Source: Monocercomonoides exilis PA203 (lineage: Eukaryota > Protista > Preaxostyla). Taken from it: 64,000 nt of DNA. The DNA lies in NCBI GenBank assembly GCA_001643675.2, contig LSRY02000039.1, positions 496,001 through 560,000 on the forward strand, given 5' to 3'. Position numbers and translations under genes: made by a program. Shown piece after piece: positions 2,475 through 64,000 of this stretch (position 1 is its first letter; every line of letters starts with the position of its first letter). The notes under the pieces were generated by a model. That model was not told where the DNA came from, did no database searches, and saw only the letters and a program-made list of their open reading frames with translations.

Positions 2475-2634
2475 TGTGGAATTCTTGTTGCATTAGAGTT
2501 TTTGAAAATTTATAATGATTTTTTCAATTCAAAATATGAACAACTGTGTTGAAGAAGATATCGAACCTTTCACAAGCAATGTTAAAAAAGATTATTTCTT
2601 TTTCTTTTTTTCTTTGCTTTTTCTTTTATCTTTT

Positions 2635-4010: not shown

Positions 4011-4057
4011 CATGAATCAAATTGAAGTGATCGTTCCTTCATCTAGTCATGAAGGTT

Positions 4058-4106
<49 letters not shown>

Positions 4107-4644: not shown

Positions 4645-4676
<32 letters not shown>

Positions 4677-4745
4677 AAAAAAAAATAAAAAAACGAAGTG
4701 CATACAGCTGAACCACCATAACCTGATTAAAATCAAAATGTTGAT

Positions 4746-5900
4746 GTGATGCTTCCTCAAATTGAATTCCAAAATAAAAAGAGAAAAAGATGGAGCCCTG
4801 CAACAAATCCACCGAATCCAACAAAAATTCAAAAGCCTTTCGTTCAATTGACAGAAAATATGAGGAATATGCTGAAGCAAGACAAAAATGAAAAAAAGAC
4901 GTTGTTCATTCAATTGAAAAAATACAACATTGGTATTTCCACTTCATCAAGATTTGTAAATGAAGTTCAACCACCCAAACCACGTGGAGTGCATGTCAAT
5001 GAAAGAATTACGTCAGACGCATCATAGAAAATGGCAAAAATGATACTTGAAAACCCAACAATTACTGTACGAGAATTATCAGAATCCGTGTCAGATCTTT
5101 GCTAGTCAAGACCTTCAATTTCCACGATTCCAAGACATGTTTAATCAAACAAAATGATTGAACATGGATGTTCGAAGTTCGCAATTAAAATGTCGCACAA
5201 ATATGAAAATGCAAGAGCTAGTCCTGCTGCAATAGAACAACCAAATGAACACTCCAAGAAAATCATGCAAAACTTAGCGGAAGGAAAAATTATGAATTAC
5301 ATTGATGAGACAAGATTAAAAACTTTTGAGCTTCAAACTGAAGGAAGATCTCCTGTCGGAATAAGATTCATTCAGTTCAGAGACAAAACAAATGTTGAAA
5401 CTGCAACTGCAATCGCAGCAATCATCGAATAACTTGGGATTCCTCATCTAACATTTGTTGAAGGGAGCTTTAATGAAGATATCTCACAAGTATTTCTCCA
5501 TTCATTGATGACAAAATTGAAACCGTTCAAATCGGAATCATGTGTATTCGTTATGGATAACGTTGGATTGCACAAAACAGAGAAAGTTAGAAATTTCATT
5601 ACATCAAAGAATTATCAAACACTTAACACTGCTCCAAACAGTTGAGAGCTGAATCCAATTGAATATGTGTACAAAATTTGGAAGTTACGATTAAAGATAC
5701 CTTCAAACATTCACACAAGCGCTCAACTGGTCGTGTTTCTTGCAGACTCGTTGAGAATAATAAAAAGAAAAGATGTTAATAGGTTCATAAAATATGTGCA
5801 ATCACATTTCATTCCATGAGCTCAACAAGGAAAAGACTTGTGCGATTCATGCTGCAAATTGATTTCTGATTTCGATGAATTGAAAGAATAAGAAATCACT
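4746..5900 (+). pseudogene. Tc1/IS630-family DD34E transposase pseudogene
   Basis: HTH-like ENPTITVRELS, YIDET, FVMDNVGLHK, and TAPNS*ELNPIEYV with 34 residues between D and E. Several stops and frameshifts; TIRs not identified. Confidence 0.85.
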
Positions 5901-34689: not shown

Positions 34690-35190
34690 CTCTGCAACAT
34701 CAAAATCTTCCTTCAGAAAATGTATTTGATGTTGTTTGCTTCCATCTCCAGCACTTTCAAAGTAATTAATCTCACATTCACCCTCTGTAACTCTAACAAC
34801 TCCAACAAACATCCTATTGAAACATATTTTCCCAAAACACCAAGTTCAGCTGATTCTGTGCGAGCAATAAAGGAAGAGGAGGAGGAGTTGTATATTTTGT
34901 GTGTTGATAACTTTTCGATTCTGTGAAAGAGCACTTGTTTGCCTTTATGAGAAGCATCACTCCAAAAGATAATTCGATTGTTGGACATGATAGAACAGAA
35001 GCATTCGGAGATTGGGATGTTGAATTGTTTATATTTCTTGAAGGGAATATTGCTGGTTATAAATACGTGGATGGTCATCTTGGCATCAAGGAAGTGAATT
35101 GCTGGCTATCAAAGATACCCTGCAAGAGCACACACAACGCGATGGGTCTTCTGAAGAAGGTGAAGAACGTTGGCGAGTATTGTTGAATGA
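34690..35190 (+). pseudogene. Internally deleted fragment of the surface-protein family
   Basis: FAFMRSITPKDNSIVGHDRTEAFGDWDVELFIF matches FAFMGSITQKDNSIVGHDRTEAFGDWDIDLFIF encoded at ~62510-62620 on the minus strand. Confidence 0.9.
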
Positions 35191-40496: not shown

Positions 40497-43469
40497 TCAT
40501 TGTTTTACATATTTGAAAGCGCTGTACTGTCTTCGCTTTTTGTTTCTTTTCACGCTCACGATACTCACAATCACAATCACCACAACAACAACAGAAAAAA
40601 CGCTTGTGGAAACAATGATTGCAACAAGATGCGTGGTGGGCATTGCCTTTGGATCGTCTTTCTTCTGCTTCACCAAAATAACATTTGCAGAATGCTTATT
40701 CTCTCCATTAATAATCCCACTCGAATAAGTCAAGCGACAAACAACTGATGCGTAATCATCAACTTCAAACAAAGATGGAGGAATCCTCACTTTCATTTCT
40801 GTCTCATTTGTGTATTCAGAAACCGGGCAATTTGTCCATTTCATTTCTTCTCCTTTCTTTTTTTTGGACACTTCAAATGTTAATCCACAAGGAAACAGAT
40901 ACGATCCATGCACAACTGCTTCGACTTCTTTCTCAATTTCATTTTCTCTTTGCAGTTCATTCTTTTTGCTGGTGTCATCTCTTTTCAGCGTCACATTCTT
41001 CAAAACGGGTGAAAAGAAATATGAATCCATGTTCTCAGCAGCTGTTCCAGTTGCTTCTTCATTAGATAGCATTCCAAATGGCTTCCCATCAAGCCCATCA
41101 CTTCCTGGAGACAACGATTCCACCAGAATCCAATCTCCATTGTTTCTGACATTGTGCCGCAAAGATGGAAATTTCTCCCAGCCAGCATCGATTGGATGGT
41201 TGTTTATGAAACTGCAGCTGTACAAATGCAACGTAGTTGAATGAGAAAGTATTGCTCCATCGCCAATGACAATAAATGAGCTGTCATTAATATTCGTTAA
41301 AAATGTTTCATTCAGAAAAACAAGCCCCGAATCCCACGAGCACAACAGATTATTCTCTTCATTTCCCTGATTCAAATGTTCCTCGTTTGTTGCATTCCGA
41401 AAAGCTCTGAGGCCGTAAGCTGCCTCATCGCACCCACGCTGACTTTTTTGGGTGATATTATTGTTTCTTCCGTAAATAACAAGTTGCGATAATTCTAGAG
41501 AACCGTATTCATATTCAATTAGCTTTTATGGAAGCAATTTTCCTTCCCCTCCAAGCACGTTTTCACCTTTCAAGCCAGTGAACCAAGGCCGAAATACAAC
41601 ATCTGTAACCTGGAAAACACATTCCCCGTATATCAAAGTTAGCGCATCTCCTTCGATCGCGTCTGGATATTCAAAATCCAAATGAAAAAATGAAAACATG
41701 CTGATTTCGTCTCCGAACACTGCAAGTGCAAAGTCGGTTTTTATATTTGCTCCAATTCGAATGGTTCCTCTGTTCTGTTCACCTTTCGATGAAGGCATTG
41801 ATAAGGAATCATTAATAGAAGAAAACTTTGTAACTTGGCATCCAGAAAACGACTCGTTGACAAAGATTTTCTCGATGATAGACAATGACATGTGATTTTT
41901 CCATGATTTGTGTTTGGCTACATCACTTAATTGTGAGCACGGTTCTTCTTTTCGCCCGCATGTTTTCTCGTTGCTTGCTTCTTCGCCTCCAACAAAGATG
42001 TTCACTGAGCGGTATGGCAATATATTCTCTTTGTCTGCTATTAGGTCAATCATTCTTCCATCTTTCCTATCTTCGAGCAGTATGTAATTCTTTTTCCCGT
42101 AAATCCCTTCCATCTCAAAATAAAATTGATCTTAATCGATCTGCTTTCTTCCTGTTGGAAATGACAAGTAAACAAATTCTCCTTTATCAGCTGTACAATC
42201 AGAAAATAATACATTCTTAAACGTTAAATCCAATGATCCTGTTGCTTCGTCAGCTGCTTGAATAAACATCGCTCCTCCTTTTGACTCGTCATTCAGATTA
42301 ACGCTCAGTCGATCTGCATTCGCGTTTGCAATTCCGCACGAACAATTCGTGAAATGCATTCGAAAAAACATGCAATGGTGCTCGCTATTCGTAATTTCCA
42401 AATATATCGCTCCTCCCAATTTGTGCTCAGTTGACCAGCAATTTGTAAAAGTGCAATCATCAAACTTTGCAGATTGGCATCCTCCCATTATCGTCAAGAC
42501 CGATTGCGTTTTGCTTTTTGTGGTGATTGAGTCCAATTTCATGCAAAAATTTTCAATTTTTTGAGAAGCTTCTGAGAGTATCAGTGCACAGGAAGATACA
42601 AAATGTGAAATCTCAACGCTCTGAAACATCAATTCACCAGATTTGCATTTAATAAGCACGCAGTTCAGCTCATTCTCTGCCTCTATATTGCTGATATTCG
42701 TATTTTCCAATTTCGTTTGTGAACCTTCTCCTTCCACATCAATTAATCCTTGATTTCTTCCGCTTTCTCGTTTTGTATCCACGCAAATATCTGAATAGCT
42801 AATGTATAAAAACCCTTTGCCTTTAACGCAAAACAAGGCGTAACCGGTTTTTTCTTTCTTTTCGTTCAAAGCAGTTGTGATACTAATTACACTTTTGTAT
42901 CCTTTTTCAAGTGTGATGTGTCTCCCATCAATTATTATTGGATCGATATCGAATCTATTGCAATTTTCTGTCGTGTGAATCTGTAATATTCCTTCGGGCT
43001 TGCAGTGCTCCACTGCCTTTTTTATGGTTTTACATGGTATATTCCCTGATAGGCCACATTCTCCGCTGTCAATCCCGTTTTCTCCATCCACTTCAACTTC
43101 ATTCTCTTCATTGAGTTCCATTTCTTTAAATGCAATTTTAGTATGAACTTCAGAAAAACCTTTCTCGTTCTCTTTTCTCCAGCTGAAATCGTACAAATTA
43201 ATAAAAGAGTTTGAATTGACCAAGTCTATAAAATCCCTTTTGTTCCTCTGATCCATGCTATCTTCTGCTTTTTTAATAATTTCCTTTTGATCTCGTATAC
43301 ATGCTATGACATCTGGATTCGGATTATCAATTCCTTCAGGAGCACTGCAAATATTCTCTGCGAAAATCGCATCCCCCTTTTCTCTTATTGCTTGAATTTC
43401 TTCGCCTTCTTTTTTATCAATGCAACTAATATCGTAGAAGCAACAAAACACGCTCACAAACAAAAACAT
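40497..43469 (-). pseudogene. Type I membrane surface protein gene (beta-helix-like modules) with two in-frame TAA codons
   Basis: Signal-like MFLFVSVFCCFY, G.D...CG....PC.T modules, LGGAIY/KGGAMF motifs and a C-terminal TM helix followed by KRNKKRR. A single frame over 2973 nt, broken only by TAA at 42132-42134 and 41526-41528. Confidence 0.85.
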
Positions 43470-44202
43470 ATCGCAATACTCTGGAATGAAAATTTTATTT
43501 TTCGATCTTAACCATATATTTATTAACAATATTGATAATTGAAACATAAAAAATAAAAATCAAAAATCAAAGAAATATATATTAATAACTGTTTATCAAA
43601 CTTTGTGATTTGAAAATATCACATTCGGTATATATGTTAATGAAAATTCATTAAATACTCAACATAAACGAGTTTTCTTGTTTTTATAATACAAATCAAA
43701 TTTCTTTTCAAAAAGGACAATATTTCATCTATATGAAAGTCACATATCTCAAAGATAAAATTAAAATATGGCGCATAATTTTTGCAATTATGAAAAAAAC
43801 TGAGAATTGTTCCAAACTTTTTCTGCAATTGATAATTATAATTCTTGATTTATATTGCAATATCAAATATTTAAATATAAAAAAAGTTGAAAAAAAATAT
43901 CGAAAGGACAAGTGGAACAGTATTCATAAAGCAAAAAATTTTGTCCCATATTCATATTTGTTAAAATTATATGGTTTGATGATCAAAAGAAAAGATATTT
44001 GAATCTTGAGTTTAAAAGAAATATTGAATGTATGAAAGGGAATTTATTTAATGCTTTATTTGTTGGAAAAATATAAATTGGATTCTGAATTTTTTCCATT
44101 TTAATTTTCATGGATAGAGAGAGATGTTTGTTTTGGTTGATTATTTTGTTGATTGATATGTTGAAAGCAATTATTGTAATTTGAACACTAAAAATAGATA
44201 AT

Positions 44203-45703
44203 ATGAAAGCTGTAAAGGGAAAATCAACAGCTGAATTGAAAGAGATTCCTCTTTCAGAGAAGTTTTCGAGTATATTTGATTTTTTCTAGATATTTTGCGT
44301 TCTTTATTGTTTTAAAAAGAATTAATCCACCTATTTGATAAATTTTCTTTTAGAGAGCCGAGCCGTATTAGCGATAAAATTTGTTGTTTGATTGACAAAA
44401 TGAATGAGGAAGAATTAAATTCTTTCTTTGCGAAAACTGTTTTCGAAAAGATTGAAAATATGTTTGAAAAAGATGAAATATCTTTGAAAAATGTTTCTTT
44501 GCTGCTAATATGTATGGGACGTTGCAAAGTATTGAAAGGAATATGGAATAACAACTTTGATGATTGTTCATTATGTTGAAAAATTGAATATCTTCTAACT
44601 GATGAAGCACGAAAAAATGAAGTGATCAATAAAAAGCAGATTACTTATCTCTGTAAATGCTATCTCTTATTAAGTGATTTTAATTTTAACGTTTCGAAGG
44701 AACTGATGCTTTTTATTGTTCCATGTCTGCTGAAAGTTTCGTTACAAAAAGAGGAAAGTGAATAAACACAAAAAGAAGTTGAAACTGCCTTATTGGCTTT
44801 GAGTTGCATTCCTGAATTTGTGGTATGAGCATTTTAATAATGTTACATATAAATATGTTTCTTTTTGCATTTGTTTCATCATAGTTCATCAATCCGACAT
44901 TGTACCTGAACGAGATAACCGAAATCATCCTGCACCATCAGGAGCATAGAAATCTTTCGAGACTGGCGTATCAATCTGCTTGGGGCTTTTTGAAGACCAG
45001 GTTATTGTTTGAAGGTGGGCTGGATGGTTTGCGTGCGAAAGAGATGTATTTTGTGACTGAAGCAGCAAAGGAACTAGAAGAGCTTTCATATTGCGTTGAT
45101 TGGATGAAAAAGGGGAAACGAATGATGGCGAACGAAGAAGAAGAATATGACGATGATGATGATGATGATGAAAGAAAAGAGGAAGAGAAAATCTCTGTTA
45201 TTAAGCGGTGGCTGATGACGATATACATCTTTCTCTTCTTCTTCCAGCTTAGTGACGCAGACGTGCTGATGCTGACAAGCAGCGTGGCCAGTTTGAACAG
45301 AAAAGCGAGGGTCAGCCGCATAAGTGTGTCGAAGGAGTGCCTCTCTTTGTACATCAGTGCGGTGGATGCGAAAGAGCATGTGGCATTTGAGCTGATGAGG
45401 ATTGGGGCAGGGGCAGTTCTGGTGGGAGAGCTGCAGAAGCCGACGCTGTACGAGCCGATGGAAAGACTGTGTTTAAAGCTGCTGAAGCAGCTGTTGAGAG
45501 GGTTTTGTGTGCGTGTGGAGAACGAGGAAGCCAGGAGGAAGTCAAAGATGTTGCAACGGGAAATGTGCGTAATGATGGAGGAAGAAGGATTTGATGACAC
45601 TATTCTGAGCCTCAAACAAATAATTGTTGGACGCATTTTTAATATCGATAGGTATTTAATTGGCAATGCGAAAGATTATGATGCGCTCTGTTTTGTCTGT
45701 TGA
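44203..45703 (+). pseudogene. Paralogue of the 37981-39468 gene with two in-frame stops
   Basis: Introns 44270-44319 (phase 1) and 44823-44884 (phase 0) lie at equivalent positions. TGA at 44577 and TAA at 44763 (EESE*TQKEVE). Motif YLNEITEII..HRNLSRLAYQSAW. Confidence 0.85.
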
Positions 45704-47081
45704 ATGTCTTTCTTATTTTTATTTATTTATTTTTTGAAGATTTTCTTCTTCATTTAAAATATCCTTTCTTTACTGCGAATATCAATTTGTCTGTGAAACA
45801 ATTATTAGTCTTTGAGAATTCAGTTGAAAACTCAAGCCTTTTATTTATTTATTTATTAACACCTTTCATTTCTGTTCTTTTTAATAAGAATAAATTAACA
45901 TTAACAAAGTGGGAAAATTAAAAGATACAGATTTCAAACAAAAACTGGAATTTTTTCCTATTTCAATTATTTTTTTCATAGAAAAAAATTTGATATTCGA
46001 AGTTTTATAAGTTTTAAAAAAATAAGGCTATTTCAAATAAGATGAACAAAAATATTTCACTTCCAAAATTTTGTGTCATCTTCGTTTTTCAATTTAATCC
46101 GTTTTTCAATTTTTTTTCAAAAGAAAAACATTAAAGTGCAGAGAACCTTTATTCTTATGAAAAACAGTTGTCTTCAACTCATGTTTATTAAAGGAGTGAG
46201 TTCTGCATTGTTAGCTCAGCTGATCACAAAATTCAAAGATGACAATTATGTTGGAAGAACATATTTTGGGACTGAGAGGGATATTCTCACAAAATCAGTC
46301 CTGCAGGCGGAATGGGAATGGAGCCTCCCATTTCCATTCCAACAACAGGAGCCCCAGGCTCCCAATTCCCATTAACGTCAGTAATCTCCTCAACAACCTC
46401 AACATCAACCAGTTCAGTTGGCTCGCCTCACTCCCCAACACATCCTCTATTAGAAGCAGCCAAATTATTCTTTGGAGAAAACTTGCCGAGTCCAGTATTT
46501 GCTTATCATGTCGATCAAGGAGATCTTTTCCAGATATTTCAAGATTATGAATCCTAATCAGTTCCCACGTTCCTGCCGGCTTCGACCCATCAACATTCGC
46601 AATCTCAAAGTTGGTTATCCTAAGCTTTGAATGAAGGAGCGTTCAATGTAGAATCCTTATTGATGCCCGCTTAGAAAGTAATGTTGATGGCAACACGAGG
46701 GACAACAGAAGAAGCATAACAACACCATGGAAATGCAATGATACTCACAGTCTCAACTCTCCAAGCTGCATGCCACTTGAACATTTAAGTCAAATTCGGT
46801 TTTAAGTCAGCAAAAACACTTCAGGAAGAAAAGGATGATCCGTTTTTGACCATAGAGCAATTGGAGAGGATGAATCCAATTTTACAGTCCAGAAAAGAGC
46901 GGAGACAGGGAAGCGCTGTTTCACACTTGTCACAAAGAACAAGGAGAATTGGCTCATGTAAAACTAGATCTACAAGCTCGGGAACTGGAAGAACAACACG
47001 TTCAGCATCAAGAAGCAATTTTTTTCGGAGAAAGGAGGGGGCCGCACCCAAGCCTTTGCCGAGGAGTGGAAGAAGATCGGA

Positions 47082-48226
47082 GTGACCAACTGGATAACAG
47101 ACGGGATAAGACCGATTTGGAAGGGGAGAGCTGCAAGAGACAAGTTGAAACAGGAAAAGATGAAAGGCAGAGGCTTCCTGGGTGGTAGAGAGGATAAAGA
47201 GGCTTGTTCAGAATGGATTCAAGAAGGATGCAGGACAGATATCTTAACACAGATACAAGAAGGAGAGGTCTGTTGCTTGAACAACATATTTTTCATAAAG
47301 AAGAAGACAGGGAAGTTCCGTCAAATTCTCGATTGTCGTCCACTCAATGTCGCATTGAAAGATATCCATTTCAAAATGGAATACCATCGCACTATGGAGA
47401 GACTGATTTAAAAGGGAGATTTTGCAACCTCACTAGATCTTTCTCAGGCTTATTTCCTGATTCCAATTCACAAGGACTTCACACCATTTCTAGCCTTCAA
47501 GTTCGAGGAGAGATACTACGGGTTCAAAGGCATGCCCTTCGGATTGAAAGACGCACCGAGAATTTTTCCAAAGGAAATGAGAAAAGTTTCGAAGGAAATC
47601 ATAAGAAGATGGAATGCGAGGTGAATTTTACACTTGGACGATGTCCTATTACTGGATCCAGATCAAGTCAAGCTGAAGACTGCAACTCAAGAAATTTTCA
47701 AGTGGTTTCAAAATTTGGGCTTAATCATCAACACGGAGAAGAGCAAGATAAGCCTCAAGAAGAACTTCAACTTCCTCAGATGGACGTGGAATACGATTCG
47801 GACAACTATTTCAGTGGAACAACAGAGACGCAGGTAACTGATGCAGGAATGTATTAAATGGATGAAGAGGGTGAAGAAGAACAGCTTTGCAAAGACAAAA
47901 GGGTTTGCTTCGTTCAAAGGACAGCTCAGCGCTGTATGGTTCGTGTCCAAATACACCTCTCTGTGCATAAACAAAATGTTCCATTTTCTCAACAAGTATG
48001 AAAAGAAAAATGGTTGGGAAGGAGCGGTTTTCATGAACAACTGCATAAAGAAACAACTGGACTTCTGGATTCAAAGGCTCAAGGAGAGATACTACAGAGA
48101 ACTGGTGGACTTCTCGAAGCCCGATGCTATTTTCGCAACAGATGCTTCCCCATGGGCTTGCGGAGCAACCTTGGCAGTTGGAGGAGAGAGATTTCGTTTT
48201 CACAAACAGTTCAACAGACACACAAA
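47082..48226 (+). pseudogene. DIRS reverse transcriptase and N-terminal part of RNase H
   Basis: IFFIKKKTGKFRQILDCRPLN..HFKME, ATSLDLSQAY, GMPFGLKDAPRIF, HLDDVL, GLIINTEKS and FATDASPWACGA. Stops and frameshifts present. Confidence 0.92.
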
Positions 48227-51200
48227 GGGTAAGTTCCAAGAATACGGATTATCGAAAAAATATTATTTTGATATTGCACACAAAAGAAAATGCTTCAACA
48301 ATTAATTCGAAATTTGTTTTTTCTGTCGAAAATGTATTGTTTTGAACAATCCGTTTTTTGTTTGATCTATCCCATAAATATTTTCTAATATTCCTTGATT
48401 TTGTTTTGTCTCATAATTTTGAAGTTTTTGGCTTTATCTTCTCACGTTGAGGAATTGATTTAAAAAAAATTATTTTATTGTTTACTTCAAACTTTTTGAT
48501 AAATATTCACAGTATCATTTTTGACTGTCATCGTTCGAAACATATACAATTTTCATGTTTTTATTCAATTTGAGCAATTTATCAATTAAAAATCAAAGCA
48601 TGATTTTCCACATTAGGGAGCAACCTTTTATAATTGTTATTGAGTGATATTTGACAATTGAATTATATTCAAACTGAATTCAATCAAATAATATTGTGGC
48701 AAAAATCCAGAAAAATGAAGCGATCAAGTATCCGCTCTTGTGTAAGTTTTGAAAGAAGTGTGATTTGTTTTTGATAATGAATTTGAAAACTTAGAGGTTA
48801 CAGCTGACACAACAAACAAAGATAGCTCTTTGAAGCAGACGCCATCCAACACCACAGCAGCACCAGAGCAGGCCTCAATGAACGAATTCCCTGCTCCTGG
48901 CTCAAATAAAGACAAAACAAAAGAAGACTGTCCAGATTACTTGCTCCAAATTCTTCTGCTGATGGCTGCTGCCTCGATGCCTGCAAGCGGATGGCCGAGA
49001 ACGAAACATTGCTCAAACACAAACAATGACTCTCAACACAAATTACAGTATTTGCCAGCTGCGCCGGCTCTTCCGACGTGATTGTGCAGTCGCTGAGAGT
49101 CAGATTTCCACTTCTCACGTCAAATACAAAGTGATGAGGTGAAGCAAACCCCGATCCAAATACGATGTTAATCTTCAAAAACTGGCTTTCCAGCGAAGAG
49201 GATACAACATAATTCGATTTTTCATCTGATTATGTGATTTCCGAGTCAAATAAAACGACAGCCTGCGTGTCTCCAACAACCTGAACCGTTACACAATGAA
49301 TGATTGTTTAAACTGTAACAAAATCATTTCTCATTACAAACACTTTTTGAAATGATCCTTCGTTGAGATGTCGCGCAGACTCGCTGAGTGTGGCACACGG
49401 ATCTGATCTTTTCCAACATTCCTTCTCATTCTTCCCTTTCTCTCCTGACACAAATATCCGCTCTGACTTGTAGAACACAATAAATGGCACAAAATCAATT
49501 GGCCCATCGTTTTCTTTGTCCATCCCGAAGATGGCATTTTCTCTGTCGAATGCCAACTCACTGAAGTCCATTACACACAGGACGCTCTCATAAGAAATGA
49601 CTGAAGCCCTCGCATTTGTGCTGCGGATGAGATGCCACTGAAGATTCTCCAGTCTGATTTCGCTCGCTTCTTTGCCCGCTTTCGCTTTTTTGCCATTCCC
49701 TGATAAGACTGATTCCTCATTTTCCTTCTCTTCCGCATTTCCTACAGAAAAAAACGATTCACCTGCAAAATTCAAAACATCAACAGAAAACGCGCTTGCC
49801 ACAAAATGTGCAGCCGGTGCAGCAAGTCGGATGGTAGATGTTGCAGAGGAGAGCTCAGCCATTTTGGATTCTTCAATCGAAAGTGTTCCAGACGAAACAT
49901 GGAAGAGCACAAAATCAATTCCTTTATCTGCTGTCTGAACCGCAAATGAGCGTTTGTTAAGCGAAACTGTTCCTATCTCAGTGAAAAGAAGTTCCTTTTG
50001 AGATGTTTCGAAAGACGAAGGCAAGCAGAAGTTGACGGAGGTGAAGGTGAGCATCAGCTTGTTTGTGAGCACAGTCTCAGAAGGCTCAGAAAGAGATTGA
50101 ATAGCTTTTCCTGCATTGATTGTGCATTCATCCGAGGAAGGCTCATCAGAAGAGGAGGAAGAAGATTAGCCAGGAGAAGAAGGAATTGCTGGTCTTATTG
50201 AGCTGTTTGAAAGGTCCCATTCACCTGAAATGGTAGCACTTGTGTTGATTTTGATTTCTCTGAACTGAATTCCTTCTCTGAAATGCCTCATCTTTTTCCA
50301 AAACAACAGACAAGGCTCCTTTTCTGATCCGCACCTGCGAATGTCACTCCCACTCAACAACACAACACCAGAATTGTATGTGTGATCAAACAGCAGCTTA
50401 CCCAAAGAAATGCCTTTGGTAAAGTTCACTTCATCTGCCCCAAAGAAAGCTGTTGTGTTTTTCCATTCAGTCCAATCAAACATCAACCTTTCAATGACAA
50501 CTGAAGAATTAAAATCGGAGCTCAATATGAACATGTTTCTGCCAACAAATGCTTCATTCTCAGAAAACACCAAATCAGACAAAGAAAATTTATCGATCTA
50601 GTTGCAGCAGCTCAGATACAAAAACACTCCTTTTCCTTTGAAAGTCGAACAAACGCAAACAATTTACAATAAACGTCATTCATCAGATCCTTCCCAACAA
50701 TAAACATGTCTCTTCCCTGGTGTTCCCTGTTTCCTCTAACACTTACGTGTGAAAATGAATATCTGTCATTGTTGTCTGTTGCACATGTCAAATAGATTCT
50801 TCCACCACATCCTTCAGAACTTCTTCAGGTGCTGTTCTTCACTCCCACATTGATCATCTTCAAATGCTAATTCGCAGATTTCAGTTCAAAATACATCGAT
50901 TTTCAGTTTTTTGACATTCTTCTGAGCAGAGTGTTTGGACCTCATATCCAAAAACTTCGATTTCGAAAGTGCTTTGAAGAGAAAACTTCTTACTATACAT
51001 ATTTAATGCTCCTTTGATGAAGCTTGTGAATGAAGAAGTGTTCACAGATAAACTGCTGGATATGAATTTCCTTCTTTTTCTTTATTGTTTTTGAGGTTTT
51101 CGCAATTATAATTATAAACAAGTTATTAAACAAATTAATATATGTTATTTTGAGAAAAATATTGCAATCATTATTAAACTGAGCTTCTATATCAACAAAA

Positions 51201-51635
51201 TATACAATGTTATTATTGATATCACCTGTTTCATTTCAATCAGTTATTGAATTCATACAAAACTGTGTTATTTCGACATTTGATAATTTTTTGATGATTT
51301 CGAATATCATGCATTCTTTTGTGCTGGAAAAAAGCTGTGCAAAAGCAAAAACTCAGATGTGATTTTTTCGTTCGAAAAGACATGAAAAAAAGTGAAGATG
51401 AAACTTGTTTGCATTTTTCAAAATTTGAGCACGACAAAAGCTTGCATGTCAAAATATAAAATGTGCAGGTCAATAAAAAAAATCAAAGAATTTAAAAAAA
51501 AGGATAGTTTGAAAATATTTGTGGGATAGATCAAAGAACAAAAATTTGAGTTTCATTCTATCCATTTTCAACAGAAAAACCAAATATTCAATTAATTATT
51601 TTGTATATTACTTTTGCGTTCAACATCAACAAATA
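48227..51635. mobile_element. Long-TIR non-autonomous element (Pack-MULE-like) carrying host gene fragments
   Basis: Degenerate inverted repeats of >=130 bp, e.g. tttgatctatcccataaatattttc (48361-48385) vs gaaaatatttgtgggatagatcaaa (51511-51535), 24/25 identical. Left end begins GGGTAAG. It interrupts the DIRS RNase H domain. The right tip appears deleted, so the TSD cannot be tested. Confidence 0.72.
48780..51010 (-). pseudogene. Captured, decayed fragment of a beta-helix-like surface-protein gene
   Basis: KGKGVFLYLSCCN..LSDLVFSENEAFVGRNMFILSSDFNSSVVIERLMFDW parallels GKGGFLCLDCQN..LENVSFTNNSAAIGKNMFILEKDFYSSVTNDSFKFDY at 60.6-60.8 kb. Also GSDIRRCGSEKEPC and GKNEKECWKRSDPCAT modules. Confidence 0.88.
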
Positions 51636-52193
51636 GTGCGCAGGACCAAACCTCCTTCCTTTGTTGAGGAAGATTGAGGCTAAATGTCAGTTGATGGAAT
51701 TGACGATGACAGCAATCCACATTCCAGGGGAGAAAAACACAACCGAAGACGCATTGTACAGGTTAGAGGCCGCAGGAGATTGTATGATAAGGAGTCAATG
51801 TCTGAAAGAAGCGGAGATGGCTCTCGGAGTGATAGCAGAGATAGACGGTTTCGCAAACGAAGGAAACAAGAGGAAGGAGATATGGTGTGGTCCTGGAAGT
51901 CCGTTCGCTCAAGATGGTCTCACCGCAGATTGGACAATGAACACTATGCTCATTCACTTTCCGATTCCATTGATTCTTCCGAGTCTCAAGAAAGCAAAAG
52001 CAGAGAGAGCGAGAGCAATCTTTCTTCTTCCGGCATGGAGGAATCAGATATGGAGCAACATTCTGGAAGAGATGATGTCTCAAAATTTCGTTTGGAGGAA
52101 CTCGAAAGCGGTTTTTGTCCGGGTGTGTACCTGATGAGAACTGCTGCAGTGCAGCCTCCCGGGGGGTTGATGGCAATAACATTCAACTGGTGA
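51636..52193 (+). pseudogene. DIRS RNase H C-terminus and Dam-like methyltransferase domain
   Basis: AIHIPGEKNTTEDALYRLE (HIPG..N..AD.LSR), then IDGFANEGNKR...DGLTADW...LIHFPIPLI...LLPAWRNQIW, the DIRS1 MT-domain pattern. Confidence 0.85.
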
Positions 52194-53172
52194 GAGAAGT
52201 GGGAGAAGAATGGTGGTGGAGAAGCCTCAGGCGCTGTGGAGTCCCAGATTGGATCATTTCCGTGAAGAAGGAGAGCATTGCCAAGACTCCATGGACTCTA
52301 TTCACATCTGGCTTCGCACTCTTTAGCCGAGAATTGGAAGAGTTGAAGCTTAGGTCGTTCCAAAAATATTTCGATGTATGGACAATGGATTGCGCAAATT
52401 GACTTTTATCCATGAGGGACAAAGGTGGAAAATATTCCTGCCTGTGTGCTAAACATTCAGCGATTTCACTCTTTTCCAAGACTGTATGTTGCAAGGAATT
52501 GAGTTATGTGAGTTTAATTAGTACAACATTTCAATCGTTCTCATTTTCCCAGACGCATTGAAAGCCTTTCACAAAGATGGAGAGCCCAAACATTGTGCAA
52601 CTGTATTACGAAAACAACGAACTGAACGAATATCTTTCTTTTTTTGAACAAACGTTAAAATGTTTAATATTTGAAAAACTGTTCACTTCCTATTGATTCC
52701 AACAGCTCGAGCAGATATTTGTGGTAAATTCCATATTTGAAGATGAAGCGATCTATTTGTCCACAAGACTCAAGACTTCCAGATCCAGGTATACATTACG
52801 GTTCCATTCCAAGAGGAGGATCACAAGCGAAATAGTCCAGAAAGAGCCATTATCACACTTTGGGATAAAGTCAAAACAACGTACGAAAATAGATATACGT
52901 TCCTCCTCAACACAACGCACCATTCACCGTCAACTACGAAGGGAATATGAACGCTTGCTGGAATCGGGATACTGAAAGCAGGGGTTTTTGAGTGATATCT
53001 GTCATATACAATAAAGCACGCATCAATATCCAAACTAGCGTCAAATGGGATCCAGGAGGTGTGCATAGCCAAGCACGCTCGCCTATCAACTATTACTCAC
53101 TTTCCATCCAGATCATTCAATGAAGTGAACCTGGAAAGCCGGATGGACCACGTGCTCCTTGCCTCAGAATAA
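52190..53172 (+). pseudogene. DIRS tyrosine recombinase pseudogene
   Basis: FTSY*FQQLEQI, STRLKTSR and ILKAGVFE*YLSYTIKHASISKLASNGIQEVCIAKHARLS, decayed forms of the YR R / K / HxxR / H boxes, located after the MT domain. Confidence 0.75.
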
Positions 53173-53749
53173 AATTGTTTTCAACAGGAAGTGCACACAG
53201 TCATGAAGATGGGCCGCATTCCCCAGTAGATAGAGTGCATTCCCTTTCGTGCAACTCAGCAAACAACGACAGACATTCACTGTTCTTGTTAAATGTTAAT
53301 TCTTTTTGAATATTTAAAAACAAAAAAAATATATTTTTAATGAATGTTAGGGGAAAAATATAATGCTTCAGTTATTTTCATTGAAAAATTATGCACTTTT
53401 CATTGAATTCTTTTATAACAAAAAACACAAATAAAATATGTCCATTTTTTTGACATTTGTGAAATGTTGAAATGCTTTATGTTTTGATTTCAACAATACC
53501 TGTTTACGGATATGAATATCAAATTTATTTTGAAATCTGAGAAAGCGAAATAAAGTTATGAGCGAAAAAAATTATTTTTGCTTTGTGCAATAAAAGCTTG
53601 AAAGTCCTTATTTTCCCCCATTTTTTTTTAATCTTATTTTTTAATGAAATGCAAGATTTCATTCGTTTGAAAAAAACGTTCAACATTTCAATGTTTCACA
53701 TAGAGAAATCGATTGCAGAAGATCAAAATAAACTGGCATTCTGTCGATG

Positions 53750-55000: not shown

Positions 55001-56012
55001 TGTTTTTGAAGTGTTTCGAGACAAGATGGATGAAATGAACTGTTAATCAAATTTTGGAATGAATCCTATTAAAACTGTTTCAAATTAAGATAAATTAAAA
55101 GTTGATAATTCCAAAGGAATTTTTATTTTTAAGATTGACAAATCTGTTCAACTGAAACAACCATTTAAATTATATAATTACAGTTGCCAACTTTTATCAA
55201 TTAACATGAATAGTGAGTGACCGTCCAACTATCTATATTTTTGTGAATTTTTTAATCAAAAAACGTATTTTTTCTAACATTCTTTTCCTTTTCGGTGTTG
55301 AATTCTCACAATTGAAAATTGCTCCTGTGAAATATTTTTTTTTTTCTTTCTTGTTAAAACTTCTGAAAAGAAACAAGATATTTTCACAATAGTTTTTAAT
55401 TGTCTTTTAATCATTAAACATTATATCGAAAAGAATTGAATTGGAATAAAAGTTTTGTCATTTTCTCGATTGATGATCCTCATAAGTTTTCTCCTCTTTC
55501 AATTTTCACTTTATTTCGATCTTTATCACTGTAAACAAATACGTTAAGAAGGAATTTTTATTCATTTTGTTTCATTAACGAGAATTTCAAAGAGAAATGT
55601 CAAACACAAAAAGAGATAAATACAAACAGTTAGCGAAATATTCACCACAATCCAAACAGCCAATAGTAACTTCAAAAAATCAAATTTTGCATTATGTCAC
55701 ACATGCACAACGAAATGCATTGAGAAGCACTCAAAGATTCTTGAACAAGCTGACGCTCAGCAATAAAAAAAAATAGATTGCAATGTTTCACATATTCATT
55801 GAATGAATGTGGGAAATTGCATATCTGCAAAATAGAAAAGCATGCATTAACTATTTATGATTGAAAGAAAACAATGAAGCATTCCTAAAATAATCATCAA
55901 CATTGAAAAACTACATATAGAGACGAAAATACATATTTCAAACATATTGACTGGATTTTTCACACAAGAACAACATAATCTGCATGGAAAACATATCTGG
56001 AAAAAAATACAT

Positions 56013-56106
56013 ACACAAACACAAACACAAACACAAACACAAACACAAACACAAACACAAACACAAACACAAACACAAACACAAACACAAACACAAACAC
56101 AAACAA
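56013..56106 (+). repeat. (ACACAA)n hexanucleotide microsatellite
   Basis: About 15 tandem copies. Confidence 0.95.
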
Positions 56107-56502
56107 AATACAATTCCAAACACGCAAAAATACAAAAATAATAATCTTGTTTTTTGAGGTGAAATACATACAAACTCAAATGAAATGCATTAACAACAAA
56201 ACAAATCCATTGACTCAATCATCCAGCCACAAAATACATCACGATTCGAAAATCGCTCTTTCCATTCATGAATCATAAATCAACTTCATTTTTTCAAATA
56301 TTTTTTCTTTTCTCTTTTGTGAGAAAAAAAAAAGGCGAATATTTTAGCTAATGAATCACTTTTTGAAGATGAAGCTCTTCCACAAACTTCATTCAACATT
56401 CAACACTTAAAAAGAGTTCATCACAAGCGTATGCTCAGAATCCTGTATTTGTTCTCCTTTCTCGCTTATTCACAAACGCAGACAATCATTTGTCCAAACA
56501 TT

Positions 56503-59500
56503 TACTCCTCCTCTCTGAATTGTCTCGCCAAACTCTCTCCTTCAATGTTTCAATAATCAAAATCAATCGCGTCTGTCGCTGTCATCATTGTCGAGCAACT
56601 TCCACAATGCCCAATCAATTCTCGCTTCACACTTCGAAGACTCGGCCTCTCTTCCCACTGCACACACAGACATCGATTTCCCAACTCCCTTAAAGCCTCC
56701 GATCCCGTTTCCCCCATCTCCTGCATCTCTCCATTCACTATCTTCTGCCCAGCCACCTCTGCCTCGTCCTCTCCAAAAGGAATCTTCAGTTTCAGTCACT
56801 TCCACAGCACCATCCCAATTGAGAATGGAGCTGATTCTTTTGCTGCTTCCTTGTTCTTGTTGATCAACAGTTCTGGTGCCTTCCACCTCAAACACTCTTT
56901 TTTGAAATCTGAGTCATCCTCAAAGGCTGATGAAGGAAGAGAGTCTTCATTGTCATCATCACTTGCAGATGAAACAATAGTTACAGTGGATGATATGGAA
57001 GATGAATCTGAATCATCTGATAAAAGGTCTGAGTGCATGACAATGCAGATAACCATGTGCTCAGAGAACAACACAATGTGTGGACTGAGATTGGTCATCG
57101 ATTGAAGAGGGTTTTCCATTTCATCAAAGGAGTGGAGAGCAAGATTTGCTACCCAAAATAGTATCTGTGCAGCTGTCATTTCTCTTTCCTGCAAAGTGCC
57201 TATCTCCATTTCCTTCTTCTCATTCCTTCCATGAAGCAGCATGAACAGCGAATCCCTCAAATCCACAATCAGCTTCTCATAAGGAGACGAACAGGCCATC
57301 GCGTCAACCAAGTTTGACATGGATGAGGTGGTTGGGCACAGATCTTCCCCTCGAACAAATGTTGAATCAGTGTCTGAAGTGTCTGTTGTTGAAGTGGATG
57401 AGACGGATGGCGAAGGATTTCGTTTCCTCTTCTCTTCATCATCTTTATCATCCATTTCCTCCAGTGCCCAGTCAGGAATCTTGTCTGAATTTCTCCCAAG
57501 AATGTATTCAGTTGATTCACTTTCACTCAATAAATGATCTGATGACTCGGAGTGTCCCAAGCTTTTCGCAAAAACCCTTTTCTTTATCCTTTCATCGTTC
57601 TTCTTCTCTCCTTCCCTCTCTGCTCTCCTCCACTGCTCCTCAGGCGACATCTCCATCGTAACCATCTCAAATGCCTTTGGATCTTTTTTGATGTTATCAT
57701 TCACAATCTCTCTCAGATCTTCTGCCTCATTCTTCACTTTTCTCCATCGAATAACAAACAAAATAAATACAACCAAAACAATAAAAAATAACATTGACAA
57801 CACAAGAACAATGATAATCCAATAAGATGCAGTCTTGTTTCCACTTTCAACAATGTTTTCTTCTCTTTTTGGCTCAATCTCACTTTTGTTCTTCAAAATG
57901 AAAGAATCAGTTGATGAAGGATTCTCTGCATTGCCAAACAAAATATATGTACTCACTTCAATTTCGTCTTCACAATTGCCGATGAGATCTTTTGCCACGC
58001 TTCCTTCTGCTTCTCTTTCCGATAAGAATCCATTTGAATCAAAATCATAATTTTCAATCTCATTCTCTTCTCCCTTCCTCTTCACAACTGAGAATGACAA
58101 ATTGCACGGAACAAGAAGCATCCCTTTGAATGCCAATTTCATTCTATCTGTCTCTTCTTTTGCTTCCACACTCTCCAACACAGGAATAAAGAATGATGAA
58201 TCCCTTTCAGAAACAATCCCTTCAAAACTGCACTCATCATTCAACATCCAAAGAGATGTGTTATCCTTCCATCCATCTCCTCCCTTCAAACTCACCACAT
58301 TCAATGTTCCAGAATCTGAACAGATAATATTTTTTCTAATTGATGGATATCCTTCAACAGATGGATTGTTATTCAAAAACTCTCCTTTATCAATATTCAC
58401 ATTTCCTCCACTCATTGTTATTCCACCTTCTGCTGAATTGGTTATTGTTGTGCCTTTCATCAAAACAGAACTCTTCACAATATCAACAAGAGATCTATCC
58501 CATCTGCATATTTCATCTTCCTTATTCTTATATTGTCCATTTCTTTCCTTTGAACTTCCATCAAAAATGCAACTGTCCATTTTCAGATTTGTGCAATTCT
58601 CCACTTTCATCAATTTCCCTTTTTTGGTCTTTGAACCGACTCCACCTATTGTGCAATTTGAAAATTGCATCGTCTTTTTCATTGACAAGCAAGATATTAA
58701 TGTTTCTTCATTTCCTTCAACTGTGATATTTTCTGAGTTGAAATTCTTGATTGTTAATTTTCCACATTCATGAATAATTATTAGAGAAGTTTTAGCTGTT
58801 GAGTTGTTAATTGTTAATGAATCAATAACTGAAGGAAGTGGTGATGAAAAATGCAATGCAGATTCTTGAAGAATAAGATTTGATATTGTGCATGCATCAA
58901 GCTGTAATTCTCCTTTTTCCATTTTAATAATGTGAAATGGAATGTTTTCAAAAGTCATATTTCCTTTTTCCATAAATTGTTTTGTTGTGAATGAACAATT
59001 CATTATTTCAAGAATCCCTCCATCTGGTGATATCAGTGATTCATGTGAAGAGATGAAATCTGAATCAAACACAAAATTCTCTCTCAACAATGAAACTGTT
59101 CCTGCTGTTGTGATCAATGTCTCTCTTGTTTTTTCAATCCCTGATTTCACTTCAACTTTACACAAGTCTCTGCTCTTTGAACTCAAACTCATTTCCTTCA
59201 AATTAATCTCTTCTTCAATTGCGCTCTTTGTGTCAACATACAATAGACTCACATATTCCGAAGTCAGATGCATTAGTCCATGATTAATTGAATCACAAGG
59301 AAGAGCATTTGTTCCACATTGCTTTTCATTTGAGCCGTTTAAACTACTCACAATAATTGTGTCACTCTGATGGATCGTAATAAATTCCATCAGATTAGTA
59401 TCGCTTGGGTAATCGCAGAGATCTCTTCCAAATATCGCATCATCACGGATGAAATGAATATCCCGAAGATCAAATTGAAATTGACTTTCATTGATCTGCA

Positions 59501-62500
59501 ATGTGATGTTGTTACACTCAATGAAAATATCATTCCCCACTTTTGCTTTGTTGTTACTGAATTTCATTCCCATAAACGCGAAATTCAATTCCCCTCTTTC
59601 CTTTGTTGCCAAATACACTCCTCCTCCTTTCCCCATGTCACCGCTGCAGCTGCAATGACTGATTGTTGTTTCAATCATCTTCATTGATCCAGATGCGCAC
59701 AATGTGAAGAATATTGCCCCTCCTTTTTCACTTGTTTCTGCTTTATCCTCCGTTATGTGGCTCTCATTCACCACCAAATTGATCTTTTTCTCACTCTTTA
59801 ATTCCAAAACGCTTGCTCCATTTCCAATTCTCTTTACTCCTGAAAATGATGAATTATCAATGTTGAGATTCATTTCCTCCCCTCCTTCATTAATCTTTGT
59901 TGTTAATTCAGGTCCTTTGATCAGAAGAAGGCATCCGACTCTTTCATTCAACAATTTCACTCGAACATTCTTCAACTGGCAAGAAATTCCAGCATTGTTA
60001 ATTGCAAAAATGCTATTTCCAACATTGCACGATTCCATCGACAAATCATTCACTTCCACAGTTCCTCCGATCGCACCCACAAACACACAATCAAATCCAT
60101 TGTTCATTCCTGCTTCTGAATGGAATGCACATCCAATTATCACCAAATCTCCATTTTTGTTTGAAATAATCGTTTTGGCTGAGTTGTCAAATCCAGATGT
60201 TAGTCGAAGTTGGATATTTCTCAATTCAAGATGATTATAATTTTCTATGAAATATTCCAGTTGAATTCCAATTGCCTTTTCAAAATTCAATATTGCTTTC
60301 ACATTCTCTTCTCCCATCTTCACACTTTTTTGATCTGATAATTGGACACATTGAATGAATCTCGAATGATAGTTGATCCTTCAATCTGAATTGTTTTATT
60401 TCCATTCTCCTTTTTCATGTTTTCCATCCCTTTCCACATTGTAAAACAAGGCTCTTCCTCACTTCCACATCTTGCCACATCATATCCATCTGATGAGATA
60501 AATATCTCAGATGAGCTGTATGGAATCAGAAACATGAACAAATCTTTGTTTGAATGAAAATCATCACTCCCAACAAAAAGAGTTTTATCATCTTTCATTG
60601 ATGAATAATCAAACTTGAATGAGTCATTTGTCACAGAAGAATAAAAATCCTTTTCCAAAATGAACATGTTCTTACCAATGGCCGCACTGTTGTTTGTAAA
60701 CGAGACGTTTTCTAAAAGAAATGGCTTCTCATTCAAACAATTTTGACAATCCAGACACAAGAATCCACCTTTTCCATTTCTTGATGAAAGCGAACAAGAT
60801 GTTGCATTTGTCGATTTTATCTCCAGTTTTTCATTCCCTTTCAATGTCACTCTTGCAACACCTCCTTCTTCACCGCTTCCAGTGTTCATAATGTTTGAAA
60901 AGTTGCAGTTTTCAAGCAAAATAGATGAAGCCATCACCAATGGAGATATGATAAACGAACAATCTGCCAAACTGCATCCCTTCAAAGTGCAACTTCCAGT
61001 TGTTGTTGATATCAATGAGTATTGAGCAATATCTGTTGATGATTGAATCTCAAACAAACAGCTTTCAAGTTGAAGACGTTCGCTTGATGAAATCAAGGAA
61101 TTCATGCTTGGTTGAAATTGACTTGGGATTCGAAATTCCAAAGCTAAAAAGCTGAGTGTCTTAATTGATGAAATAACAATTTTGGATGCAGAATCTCCAT
61201 TGATCGTCTTTTCAAAATAAGCTGTCTTATGTTTAATGGCATCTCCTTCATTCACACACCCATCAATCACAAGTGCATCCTGGAACGAAAAAACATTTTC
61301 AATTGTCCCTTCATCTTTCACTTTCACTTTCCTTTCTCCAACTGCTCCACTTCTGTCAATGTGGTCAATTCCACTTTTCATCGATTGACAAGGGAATCTT
61401 TCACTTCCACATCCCAATGTGTCATGTCCATCTGCTGATACAGTAACTTCAATCCGCTTTAAAGAAACAAGAAACACTCGAAGATCCATTTCCCCATATT
61501 TTCCGTCTTCCCCAACAAATGCATTCCCATCATCTTTGTAATCTGTGTTTACAATTGCAAAACGCTCTATTTTCACACTGTTCACCAGATTGCTGCTCTT
61601 TACAAACATGTTCTTCCCAACTGTTGCTGAGCATCCAGAAAACAATATCGATGAAAATCGAAATTCTCCTTCATTTGAACTGCAATCCAGATATATCCCT
61701 CCTCCTTTTCCTTCTTCAACTCCATTCTCACAAATACATCCAACAAATGAACTCTCTTGAATTGTAATATATCCTCCTTCACTCAATGCTATCTTCAGTG
61801 CTCCTCCTTCTTTGCTCTTCTCTGATAATGCCCCTTCAATTCTGCTTCCATTCATCACCATTCCAATCCCCATGCTCCCTCCAAACAGTGTTGCCTCTCC
61901 ACTTCCATCAATCTCCAATCCTTCCAGTGTGCAATTCAACAATTTCAGTCTGTATTCCTGTTCATTCAAATTTGCTGAGGAAAGCGAAATTGAAAACAAC
62001 GAAACTGTTGAGTTCACATCTGATATCGTGACAGAGTCCAACTCAACCATCTTCCCAGTTGATTTGATCAAGAAATATCCAATTGTGTTTTGCTTCCCTC
62101 CAACCACACTCATCTCACAGTTCTTCATGTGCAATTCCCCATTTATACTGCTCGATTCGATCACTGATGAAATTGTTCTGCTAAAACTCGAGGGGACAAC
62201 AATCCCAATTAACTCCATTTCTGTCAGAGAAGCTGATTTCAGAATGCATTCTTCAAAGCCACTAATTTCTCTTTGGCATTCTATCTCCACAAATGTCTCA
62301 GCTTTGGCCTTCACATTCATCCCTCCCACATCTACACATCCCGTTAAAGAAGATTTTGAACACATAACAATTTCCTGTTTTAAATTCTGCGATCTCTTCA
62401 GATGATCCATCCCATAATTAACATTCAAACATGGCGCCTTCTCCAATCCACAATACACCTCCTCTACTCCAGATATTCCATCGACAAATATTGCATCATC

Positions 62501-64000
62501 AAAGAATCCATCAAAGAATATGAACAAGTCGATATCCCAATCACCGAATGCTTCTGTTCTATCATGCCCAACAATCGAATTGTCTTTCTGAGTGATGCTT
62601 CCCATGAAGGCGAAGGAAGTTTCGTTCACAGAAGCGACAAGGGATTCACACACAAAATACATATCTCTTCCGACACTGGCCTTGTTGGCTGAAAACATCA
62701 CATTTATCATGGAAAAGGAGGATTCCGATACTTGTGAGAATTGGTTGAACTCGATCATGAGAGCACCGCCTTTTCCTCCAGAACTTGTATCCTCGCTCAC
62801 AGAGCAGGTGGAGAAGGTGGAGTTCATCACAGAAAATGTGTTGGCGGGGGCAGATGAGGCGAATGAGATGCACCCGTCATTGGTGGCATTCTGTTGGTTT
62901 TGTGGAGCTGAGTTGATGTTGGTGATGGTGCAGTTTGTGAGGGAGAGGGAGAGGGCAGGGGAGGTGGCAGAGGAGAGGACACAGCTGGCGGGGGAGGCTG
63001 TGGAGGTGATATCTGTGATGTTGGAGGAGGTGAAAGTGAGGGGAGTGGTGAGGGAGGTGAGGTGGAAGATGCTTTGGCTGCTGAGGGAGAGTTTTGTGAT
63101 TGCTGTGTGGTTGAGGGCGAGGGAGCCAGCAGTGAGGAAGAAGAGGGGGGTTGTGATTGATGATGAAGATGGGGTTGTTCCGGTGATGGTGGTTGTGTTG
63201 AGTTTGAGGGAAGGGGAGTTTTGGGAGAGATGGAAGAGGATGGGGGTGATTTGATTTGTGGAGTTGTGAGCGATGGCGAGGACAGAGACTGTGAGGGATC
63301 CCTGTGTTTGTTGGAAGAGGGCAGACGAGGCAGATGGATCTGGTGAAGAAGATGAGGGAGAAGAATAAGTGAATGTTGCATGCTGAGGAATTCCACTGGA
63401 TGCTATAGTGGTGACGGTTGTTCCATTTCCGATGATTTTTGTGTCAACCGCACGAAAAGTGAGTGTTTGAAGAGGAACAAATGTTGAGGTGAGGAGGGTG
63501 ATTAAAGATTCTTGTACTGCTTTTACACATCCAAGAGCATATTCAACTGTACCACATGGGGTCAATTGTGGCCTTCCACAGGCCTCGATATCTTCTCCGC
63601 TATCTGCAACGATTATGCTTGTTGCAATGAGGGGAAGCCAATTGTTGTACAATTCATTTGTTGCAGATCCACAGTTCCACACTCTGTTTATAGGGGTTGT
63701 TGATCCGCATTGCTGGAATGGGGATTGAGTAATTTCGTAACCATTGAAGAACACATCGTTTCCTCTTCCATTTGCAGCTGTGTTGCTATCGAAAAAACAA
63801 AAAGTGATGAATTTTATTCCATTCATCCAGGAATAAGTTGAATAGAAGAAAATGGCAGCACCTCCATATGTCGAAGAAGCAGTCAATTTATTGTTTACGA
63901 ATTGGCAATCATTAACCAAAAATTGGCTTGGTTTTTTATTCGGAGGATTATAAAATGAAAGAGAACCAGTTGAATCTCCACCAGAATTTGATATACACTT
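56503..64000 (-). CDS. Large receptor-like protein: repeated beta-helix-like extracellular modules, one TM helix and a degenerate kinase-like tail (5' end beyond window; 1 frameshift, in-frame TGAs near the C-terminus)
   Basis: The frame is open from 64000 to 60320, shifts at the T6 run 60326-60331, then runs to TGA 56796. It continues as LKLKIPFGEDEAEVAGQKIVNGE...CLCVQWEERPSL to TGA 56550 and TAA ~56503. GGA(I/L), GKGGG and FxxN motifs; TM YWIIIVLVLSMLFFIVLVVFILFVIRW; LRWKAPELL with no HRD or DFG. Confidence 0.85.

Follow-up and report, generated by a model that had tools for sequence, protein, structure and literature searches.

The DNA analysed here, 64,000 nucleotides of the Monocercomonoides exilis PA203 genome (contig LSRY02000039.1, positions 496,001 to 560,000; the window), contains a degenerate DIRS-like retroelement that is broken within its RNase H region by an insert of 3.4 kb. 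We assign this insert, at a probability of about 0.87, to the non-autonomous transposons of the Merlin (IS1595-like) superfamily of this species. It belongs to a family of elements dispersed over the genome, and its cargo is a fragment of a giant host gene. The window copy is a relic of some age, with internal deletions and a truncated end, and its cargo is a pseudogene. An earlier note, written from the sequence alone, had taken the insert for a gene-carrying element of the Pack-MULE type, that is, a derivative of the Mutator superfamily. The genome searched was that of M. exilis (82.3 Mb in 101 contigs, labelled C1, C2 and so on below); L-numbers denote stretches fetched from it.

For the first 204 bases of the insert, the genome contains at least 40 matches, which occur in inverted pairs 1.6-9.2 kb apart. 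A 28-nt pattern of the terminus was found at 57 forward and 55 reverse sites (at least 112 termini), and a control pattern at none. Fifteen paired elements were fetched for inspection of their arms and flanks. The 30 aligned arms, 157-192 bp long, gave the consensus GGCAAGTTCCAAGtATATGGACCATCGAT, and nearly all of them start with 5'-GG, the exceptions being the mutated left arm of L038 and right arm of L033. The two arms of one element are 92-100% identical in most cases (89-100% over all 15), and arms of different elements about 75-89%. Target duplications of 8 bp flank the elements perfectly in nine cases and with seven of the eight bases in one more; the duplication of L033 was scored by eye after correction of its mutated right tip. 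Derivatives with internal deletions, 1.6-4.8 kb long, keep both arms, and no transposase was found in the 15 inspected elements. The proposal that an element with terminal inverted repeats had moved a piece of a host surface gene is thus borne out, since inverted arm pairs enclose the cargo and are accompanied by target duplications. The opposite picture, in which the arms would occur exclusively as solo repeats or miniature inverted-repeat transposable elements (MITEs), does not hold for the same reasons. Duplications of 8-10 bp had been expected, and 8 bp is the length seen in ten of the 15 elements; at the window copy one flank has been lost.

Which transposase could have moved these elements? 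Merlin elements have 5'-GG termini and make target duplications of 8-9 bp, and from Monocercomonoides sp. PA203 more than 100 Merlin copies in at least seven families, all with 8-bp duplications, have been described (PMC8101967). The Merlin/IS1595-type DDE domain PF12762 gave 575 candidates in the genome, and 150 scored matches were listed. In LSRY01000484.1, a supplementary contig of PMC8101967, the same arms lie at both ends of one element and are flanked by AAATGTTT. This element shares with the cargo family the first 28 nt of the arms and the subterminal motifs GTCGAAAA and GATCTATCCCAT. An open reading frame (ORF) just inside its left arm contains, by eye, the Merlin catalytic blocks QVDEM..., VWSDEWKGY and NAIEAYW (D...D...E). 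The exact arm variant of the element is present in the searched genome as a pair 5.86 kb apart, at C2:349297-355160, which corresponds to the published copy. The arm subfamily of this transposase type has 25 termini, in pairs from 1.86 to 12 kb apart, none of which is among the cargo matches. Because its arms are shared with a Merlin element, we read the cargo family as the non-autonomous sister of a Merlin lineage that encodes a transposase. It combines 8-bp duplications and 5'-GG ends with arms held in common with a transposase-encoding element, the ORF of which was read by eye. Both termini, as a mobilisable Merlin copy has them, are present in other family members, unlike the window copy.

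The assignment to Mutator had its reasons: the inverted repeats are long (about 175 bp), the terminus is rich in G, there is no transposase, and a fragment of a host gene lies inside. A Pack-MULE-like derivative would have been moved by a transposase of the MURA type. However, the domain of Mutator-like elements (MULEs), PF10551, gave neither matches nor first-look candidates anywhere in the genome, the target duplications measure 8 bp and not 9-11, and identical arms flank a Merlin transposase in the published contig. With the 5'-GG ends added, the Mutator class had to be given up, and we consider it extremely improbable.

A non-autonomous hAT element mobilised by the hAT transposases of this genome would also leave 8-bp duplications. 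Such transposases are not rare here, with 41 matches of the dimerisation domain over the cut-off among 118 candidates, and ORFs of about 900-1000 amino acids (aa). Termini of hAT elements usually read YARNG, whereas the ends in question read GGCAA. Moreover, no similarity to the arms was detected in ten hAT loci, which are partial loci whose element ends were not reached, and none of the hAT matches falls between two paired arms. A hAT origin is therefore improbable, although somewhat less so than a Mutator one, and we retain Merlin as the superfamily of the insert.

The origin of the cargo is best seen in the most complete member of the family, L041 (C33:109269-114092, 4824 bp), which has adjacent ORFs of 135, 730 and 289 aa on its minus strand. 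Both the 730-aa ORF and the complete element served as queries against the genome. Eight host loci match L041 from position 558 (or 531) to position 4226/4227 at 85-93% nucleotide identity, and the matches sit in uninterrupted ORFs of 1091-4328 aa, six of them of at least 3900 aa. In the long ORFs the matching piece, 3.67 kb, makes up at most about one third of the frame. No arms are found near the eight loci, and L041 positions 1-557 and 4228-4824 are absent from them. The same edges recur in all eight comparisons, which argues for a single capture of this 3.67-kb piece of a host gene. About 30 arm-bounded loci hold parts of the fragment; the internal regions of element copies are mutually homologous, and all cargo-bearing copies share parts of the one 3.67-kb fragment. 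As judged from these sequence comparisons, the cargo is one inherited fragment in all cargo-bearing copies and not the product of independent captures. The donor that the earlier note hoped to find is thus a group of eight host ORFs. Its further suggestion, that modules are being duplicated and shuffled, stands as regards the spreading of one fragment; shuffling is merely hinted at by the mosaic identity described below, and repeated capture was not seen.

The transfer can be read from host to transposon, because the segment is in frame in long ORFs and is related at 25-34% to many members of the gene family. Could the 3.67 kb have been born in the transposon and exonised by giant host genes? 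L041 is 91-93% identical to host ORFs, which is above the identity between many element copies and would agree with such a direction. It conflicts with the in-frame position of the segment in uninterrupted ORFs of up to 4328 aa, with the homology of 25-34% to dozens of armless family members, and with the lack of the element flanks (1-557 and 4228-4824) in host genes. We regard the reverse direction as very improbable and continue with capture from the host.

The extra internal DNA of the two largest elements, L033 and L039, was considered as a sign of second captures, and this was rejected. In L033 the additional 3.7 kb, and in L039 the additional 6.3 kb, are nested transposons of other families. 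The nested transposon of L033 (L033:1498-5187, on C17) has GG ends (GGTCTATTATGTACC...) and 209-bp arms that agree at 99%. With another fragment of the beta-helix receptor family inside (ORF 3941-4591), it looks like a second cargo-carrying family. That of L039 (L039:579-6932, on C1) has GGG...CCC ends, perfect 28-bp arms and an ATAT duplication; it contains many host-like gene pieces and has a sibling at C32:344603-351024. In this genome, then, fragments of large host gene families are found as cargo in several families of transposons.

The window copy can now be described against L041 and against intact copies of the retroelement. Its parts are as follows.

46320-48227, plus strand: left part of the host DIRS-like retroelement (reverse transcriptase and start of RNase H), degenerate; 86.5% identity over 1916 columns to intact-copy positions 1-1915 (C2, L053 plus L062).
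48220-48227, no strand: putative left copy of the 8-bp target duplication, ACACAAAG; it abuts the terminus and the family makes 8-bp duplications; the right copy would have been deleted.
48228-48402, plus strand: complete left terminal inverted repeat, GGTAAGTTCCAAGAATACGG...; its alignment with the 30 arms of 15 other elements begins at the first base.
48403-48784, plus strand: left subterminal, element-specific, AT-rich non-coding DNA; homologous to L041 positions 176-557, with no match in host genes.
48785-51072, minus strand: cargo; by DNA and protein comparison, a piece of a giant beta-helix surface-receptor gene that has decayed, with stop codons, and now consists of three blocks.
51073-51493, plus strand: right subterminal element-specific DNA; homologous to L041 positions 4228-4649 at 60-65%.
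51494-51617, minus strand: right terminal inverted repeat in truncated form, without its GG tip and the rest of the outer ~52 nt; the alignment with other arms ends at about position 53.
51618-53270, plus strand: right part of the host DIRS-like retroelement; 82% identity to intact-copy positions 2040-3694.

The insert starts at 48228 with GGTAAGTTCC, where the family consensus is GGCAAGTTCC, so that the left arm begins GGTAAG; this arm is 76% identical to positions 1-175 of L041. As a whole the copy corresponds to L041 positions 1-1357, 1722-2795 and 3805-4753. The cargo blocks 48785-49580, 49573-50658 and 50650-51072 represent L041 positions 558-1357, 1722-2795 and 3805-4227, and the 2.3 kb of cargo are 56-78% identical to the L041 ORFs in tblastn. 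Two internal deletions separate the blocks, one of 364 bp (L041 1358-1721) and one of 1009 bp (L041 2796-3804). The second is common to at least 12 copies, and both occur together at C25:1783939-1786239. Such sharing indicates that deletion derivatives were themselves copied. The insert had been said to lack a transposase, and none is present: 48228-51598 is wholly covered by homology to the 4.8-kb L041. It had also been said to have inverted repeats at both ends, and 48297-48402 does match 51494-51600 at 75% over 109 nt, with the right arm short of its outer ~52 nt. Having lost these nucleotides, the window copy is immobile.

The retroelement frame ends ...FHKQFNRHTK at 48227, and intact copies elsewhere in the genome are uninterrupted across this point, just as the earlier reading of a broken RNase H required. 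The edges then given, 48227-51635, need a small shift. Homology to the intact copy covers 46320-48225 and begins again at 51618, not 51636, which leaves 48228-51617 as the insert. Intact-copy positions 1916-2039 (124 bp, about 41 RNase H codons) are missing from the window, and the insertion was therefore not clean, or not kept clean. No right-hand target duplication is left. A deletion over the right junction best explains jointly the lost arm tip, the lost duplication and the missing 124 bp. We also considered two separate DIRS copies flanking the insert and rejected this, as the halves are collinear with one intact copy and identity to it is 74-95% per 200 columns on both sides. In the intact copy RVT_1 is recognised above the cut-off (E 2e-28), and RT_RNaseH_2 (E 2e-4) and Phage_integrase (E 4e-3) appear weakly, both under their cut-offs; this fits a DIRS-like element, without being proof.

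The borders of the insert can also be read as AAG|GTAAGT and AAATAG|, with GTAAGT at 48229-48234 and TAG at 51634-51636, as in a spliceosomal intron or an introner-like element. Here, GTAAGT is what the arm tip GGCAAGTTCC has become in this copy, and TAG is a mutated DIRS codon, the intact copies having CAGGTGG. Splicing would break the frame and leave the 41 RNase H codons (124 bp) missing. Among the explanations that we weighed, the intron is the least probable. An assembly error that fused a DIRS copy with a repeat would be conceivable, the reads being long and noisy and L043 forming a suspiciously perfect palindrome. It is set against a left junction exactly at the family terminus, the collinearity of both DIRS halves with one intact copy, and the copy's own sequence divergence throughout. 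The chance of such an artefact seems to us minute, and the insert is treated below as a Merlin derivative present in the genome.

Several points weigh against this conclusion. Five of the 15 inspected elements lack a clean target duplication, namely L038, L041, L044 and the palindromic L042 and L043. The transposase of the element at C2:349297-355160 was read by eye from the published supplement and is not among the best 150 PF12762 matches listed. hAT elements, likewise makers of 8-bp duplications, are present in the genome. The donor ORFs are known from coordinates and identities alone. Finally, the window copy has no pair of target duplications and one intact end, so that transposition at this site is deduced from the family.

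What does the cargo encode? The genes at 56-64 kb of the window are its relatives (tblastn E 1e-20 to 1e-32), as is a module at 41844-42416 (E 4e-13). The ORF at 42132-43547 by itself has no significant similarity to the cargo, so that of the kinship earlier claimed with genes at 40-43 and 56-64 kb the second part holds entirely and the first for this module. Pfam gave no match to the cargo or the neighbouring genes, even at E 10. The gene at 56796-63919 is a paralogue of the cargo at 25% identity, with a long ectodomain and a clear hydrophobic membrane segment, YWIIIVLVLSMLFFIVLVVFILFVI. Its tail contains, by eye, the kinase-like motifs RWKAPE and then, in the next frame, ...RPSLRSV, which are not recognised by Pfam. 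Tyrosine kinases are among the largest gene families of this organism and overlap unclassified repeats (PMC8767320). One giant gene with beta-helix-like modules is made up of two ORFs (1199 and 1175 aa) that directly adjoin each other on the minus strand of 56550-63919.

The modules start with a conserved CG....PC motif. A model of one module, based on five paralogous ones, was all-beta, with a predicted local distance difference test score (pLDDT) of 64 and a predicted template modelling score (pTM) of 0.74; prediction from a single sequence was of no use (pLDDT 32). Almost all Foldseek matches of the model were right-handed beta-helices (tailspikes, pectin and polysaccharide lyases), and all were weak, the best having E 1.7e-3, with template modelling (TM) scores of 0.25-0.48. 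Neighbours in the protein atlas were the DUF1565, PMP and Beta_helix clusters and one Preaxostyla cluster, and a profile of the five modules found no match among PDB sequences. The label of a surface-protein family for the cargo is reasonable.

Identity between the elements is mosaic. Five elements were compared with each other, and in all ten pairs identity is 86-94% in the middle of the cargo and 69-85% at its edges, with 56-80% in the element-specific subterminal DNA and 63-89% in the arms. The middle of the cargo is 2-3 times less diverged than the rest. The middle block of the window copy resembles host ORFs (87-90% identity) as closely as it does sibling elements (82-89%), and the edges of its cargo are 77-85% identical to host ORFs. 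Selection on the cargo is unlikely, because most copies have stop codons. Ectopic gene conversion with host paralogues would produce such a centre-high pattern, since conversion is rarer near the ends of homology; these sequence patterns hint at it, short of proof.

The history that we propose is as follows. The ancestor of the family replaced or lacked its transposase gene. It held 3.67 kb from the interior of a giant beta-helix surface-receptor gene, captured probably by template switching during the repair of an excision gap. The composite then spread to about 30 or more places, with an 8-bp target duplication at each insertion; a Merlin transposase acting in trans would have mobilised it and may recognise the ~28-nt arm tips. 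Internal deletion derivatives arose and were copied in turn, and one of them, without element positions 1358-1721 and 2796-3804, landed in the RNase H region of the DIRS-like element at 48227/48228. A later deletion took away 124 bp of DIRS sequence together with the right target duplication and the outer ~52 nt of the right arm. The middle of the cargo would later have been homogenised by gene conversion with host paralogues. A bolder idea, which we consider unlikely, is that the dispersed copies are in two-way ectopic gene conversion with the giant receptor genes and serve as a scattered archive of ectodomain cassettes that would contribute to the diversification of the largest gene family. 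It resembles the pseudogene archives for variant surface antigens in other protists.

Some further loci touch on the arm family and its relatives. L043 (C23:118237-122706) has an inverted repeat that is 100% perfect over 658 nt and runs 500 nt past the transposon tips to both fetched ends, as would be seen in a genuine large palindrome or after an assembly error. L042 (C33:392227-395557) is a 2.3-kb non-coding member without target duplication, with a perfect 295-nt inverted repeat that extends 41 nt beyond the GG tips. An 8.1-kb arm pair at C12:1560861-1569015 encloses receptor cargo (1561608-1564072) and a match to the Merlin DDE domain (1565095-1565487, on the minus strand, in an ORF of 378 aa); either a Merlin is nested here, or one element has both cargo and transposase. 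C39:287512-293276 holds a 5.8-kb relative of the element at C2:349297-355160. Four arm pairs of the transposase-type subfamily have nearly the same length of 1.86 kb (C21:1266540-1268399, C60:436493-438354, C12:499338-501196 and C47:987150-989018) and are probably a recently amplified short derivative. The Merlin copy in LSRY01000484.1 also holds a decayed piece similar, by eye, to the gene family of window 44900-45703 (motif HQEH.NL.RLAYQSAW), and this gene family occurs in the flank of the copy as well. An insertion of about 260 bp in a hAT copy (L081:2209-2477, on C36) matches the flanks of the unrelated L032, L036, L037, L042 and L043 and is probably a separate MITE family.

Elsewhere in the window, 34860-35171 is 54% identical to residues 410-513 of the ORF at 60320-63919, with no inverted repeats seen around it. 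Positions 8521-8661 are 51% identical to part of the cytoplasmic tail of the giant gene, and 55960-56140, immediately downstream of this gene, is a long (GT/CA)n microsatellite.

How does the family compare with known systems? The Pack-MULEs of rice, maize and Arabidopsis are transposase-less elements with long terminal inverted repeats that multiply host gene fragments by cut-and-paste transposition. The cargo family works like them, because a transposase-less element with terminal inverted repeats has moved a piece of a host gene around the genome, and in both cases a host gene fragment forms the internal region. In contrast to Pack-MULEs, it belongs to Merlin and not to Mutator, has duplications of 8 bp instead of 9-11 bp, lives in a protist, and has passed on one fragment family-wide instead of making many independent captures. 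Families of the Ac/Ds type consist of an autonomous element and its internally deleted derivatives. Here too, derivatives with internal deletions keep both arms and some deletions are common to many copies. However, even the longest member with cargo (4.8 kb) is non-autonomous, and the deletions remove cargo, not transposase.

Capture of gene fragments by Mutator, CACTA, hAT and Helitron elements is well known, mostly from plants. Our literature search found no description of such capture by Merlin elements or in oxymonads. The Merlin families described from Monocercomonoides sp. PA203 have the same 5'-GG termini, 8-bp target duplications, arm tips and subterminal motifs (PMC8101967). They differ in that the published copies bear a transposase and have terminal inverted repeats of 23-29 bp, whereas the cargo family has arms of about 175 bp, no transposase and a host gene fragment; in the main text of PMC8101967 we found no mention of non-autonomous elements or MITEs. 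About 35% of the genome has been classed as 'unclassified repeat', overlapping the largest gene family (PMC8767320), and families such as the cargo-bearing Merlin account for part of this overlap. This matters for annotation, because copies of the cargo can look like genes. If the cargo truly exchanges sequence with receptor genes, transposons would be part of the evolution of the surface-protein repertoire.

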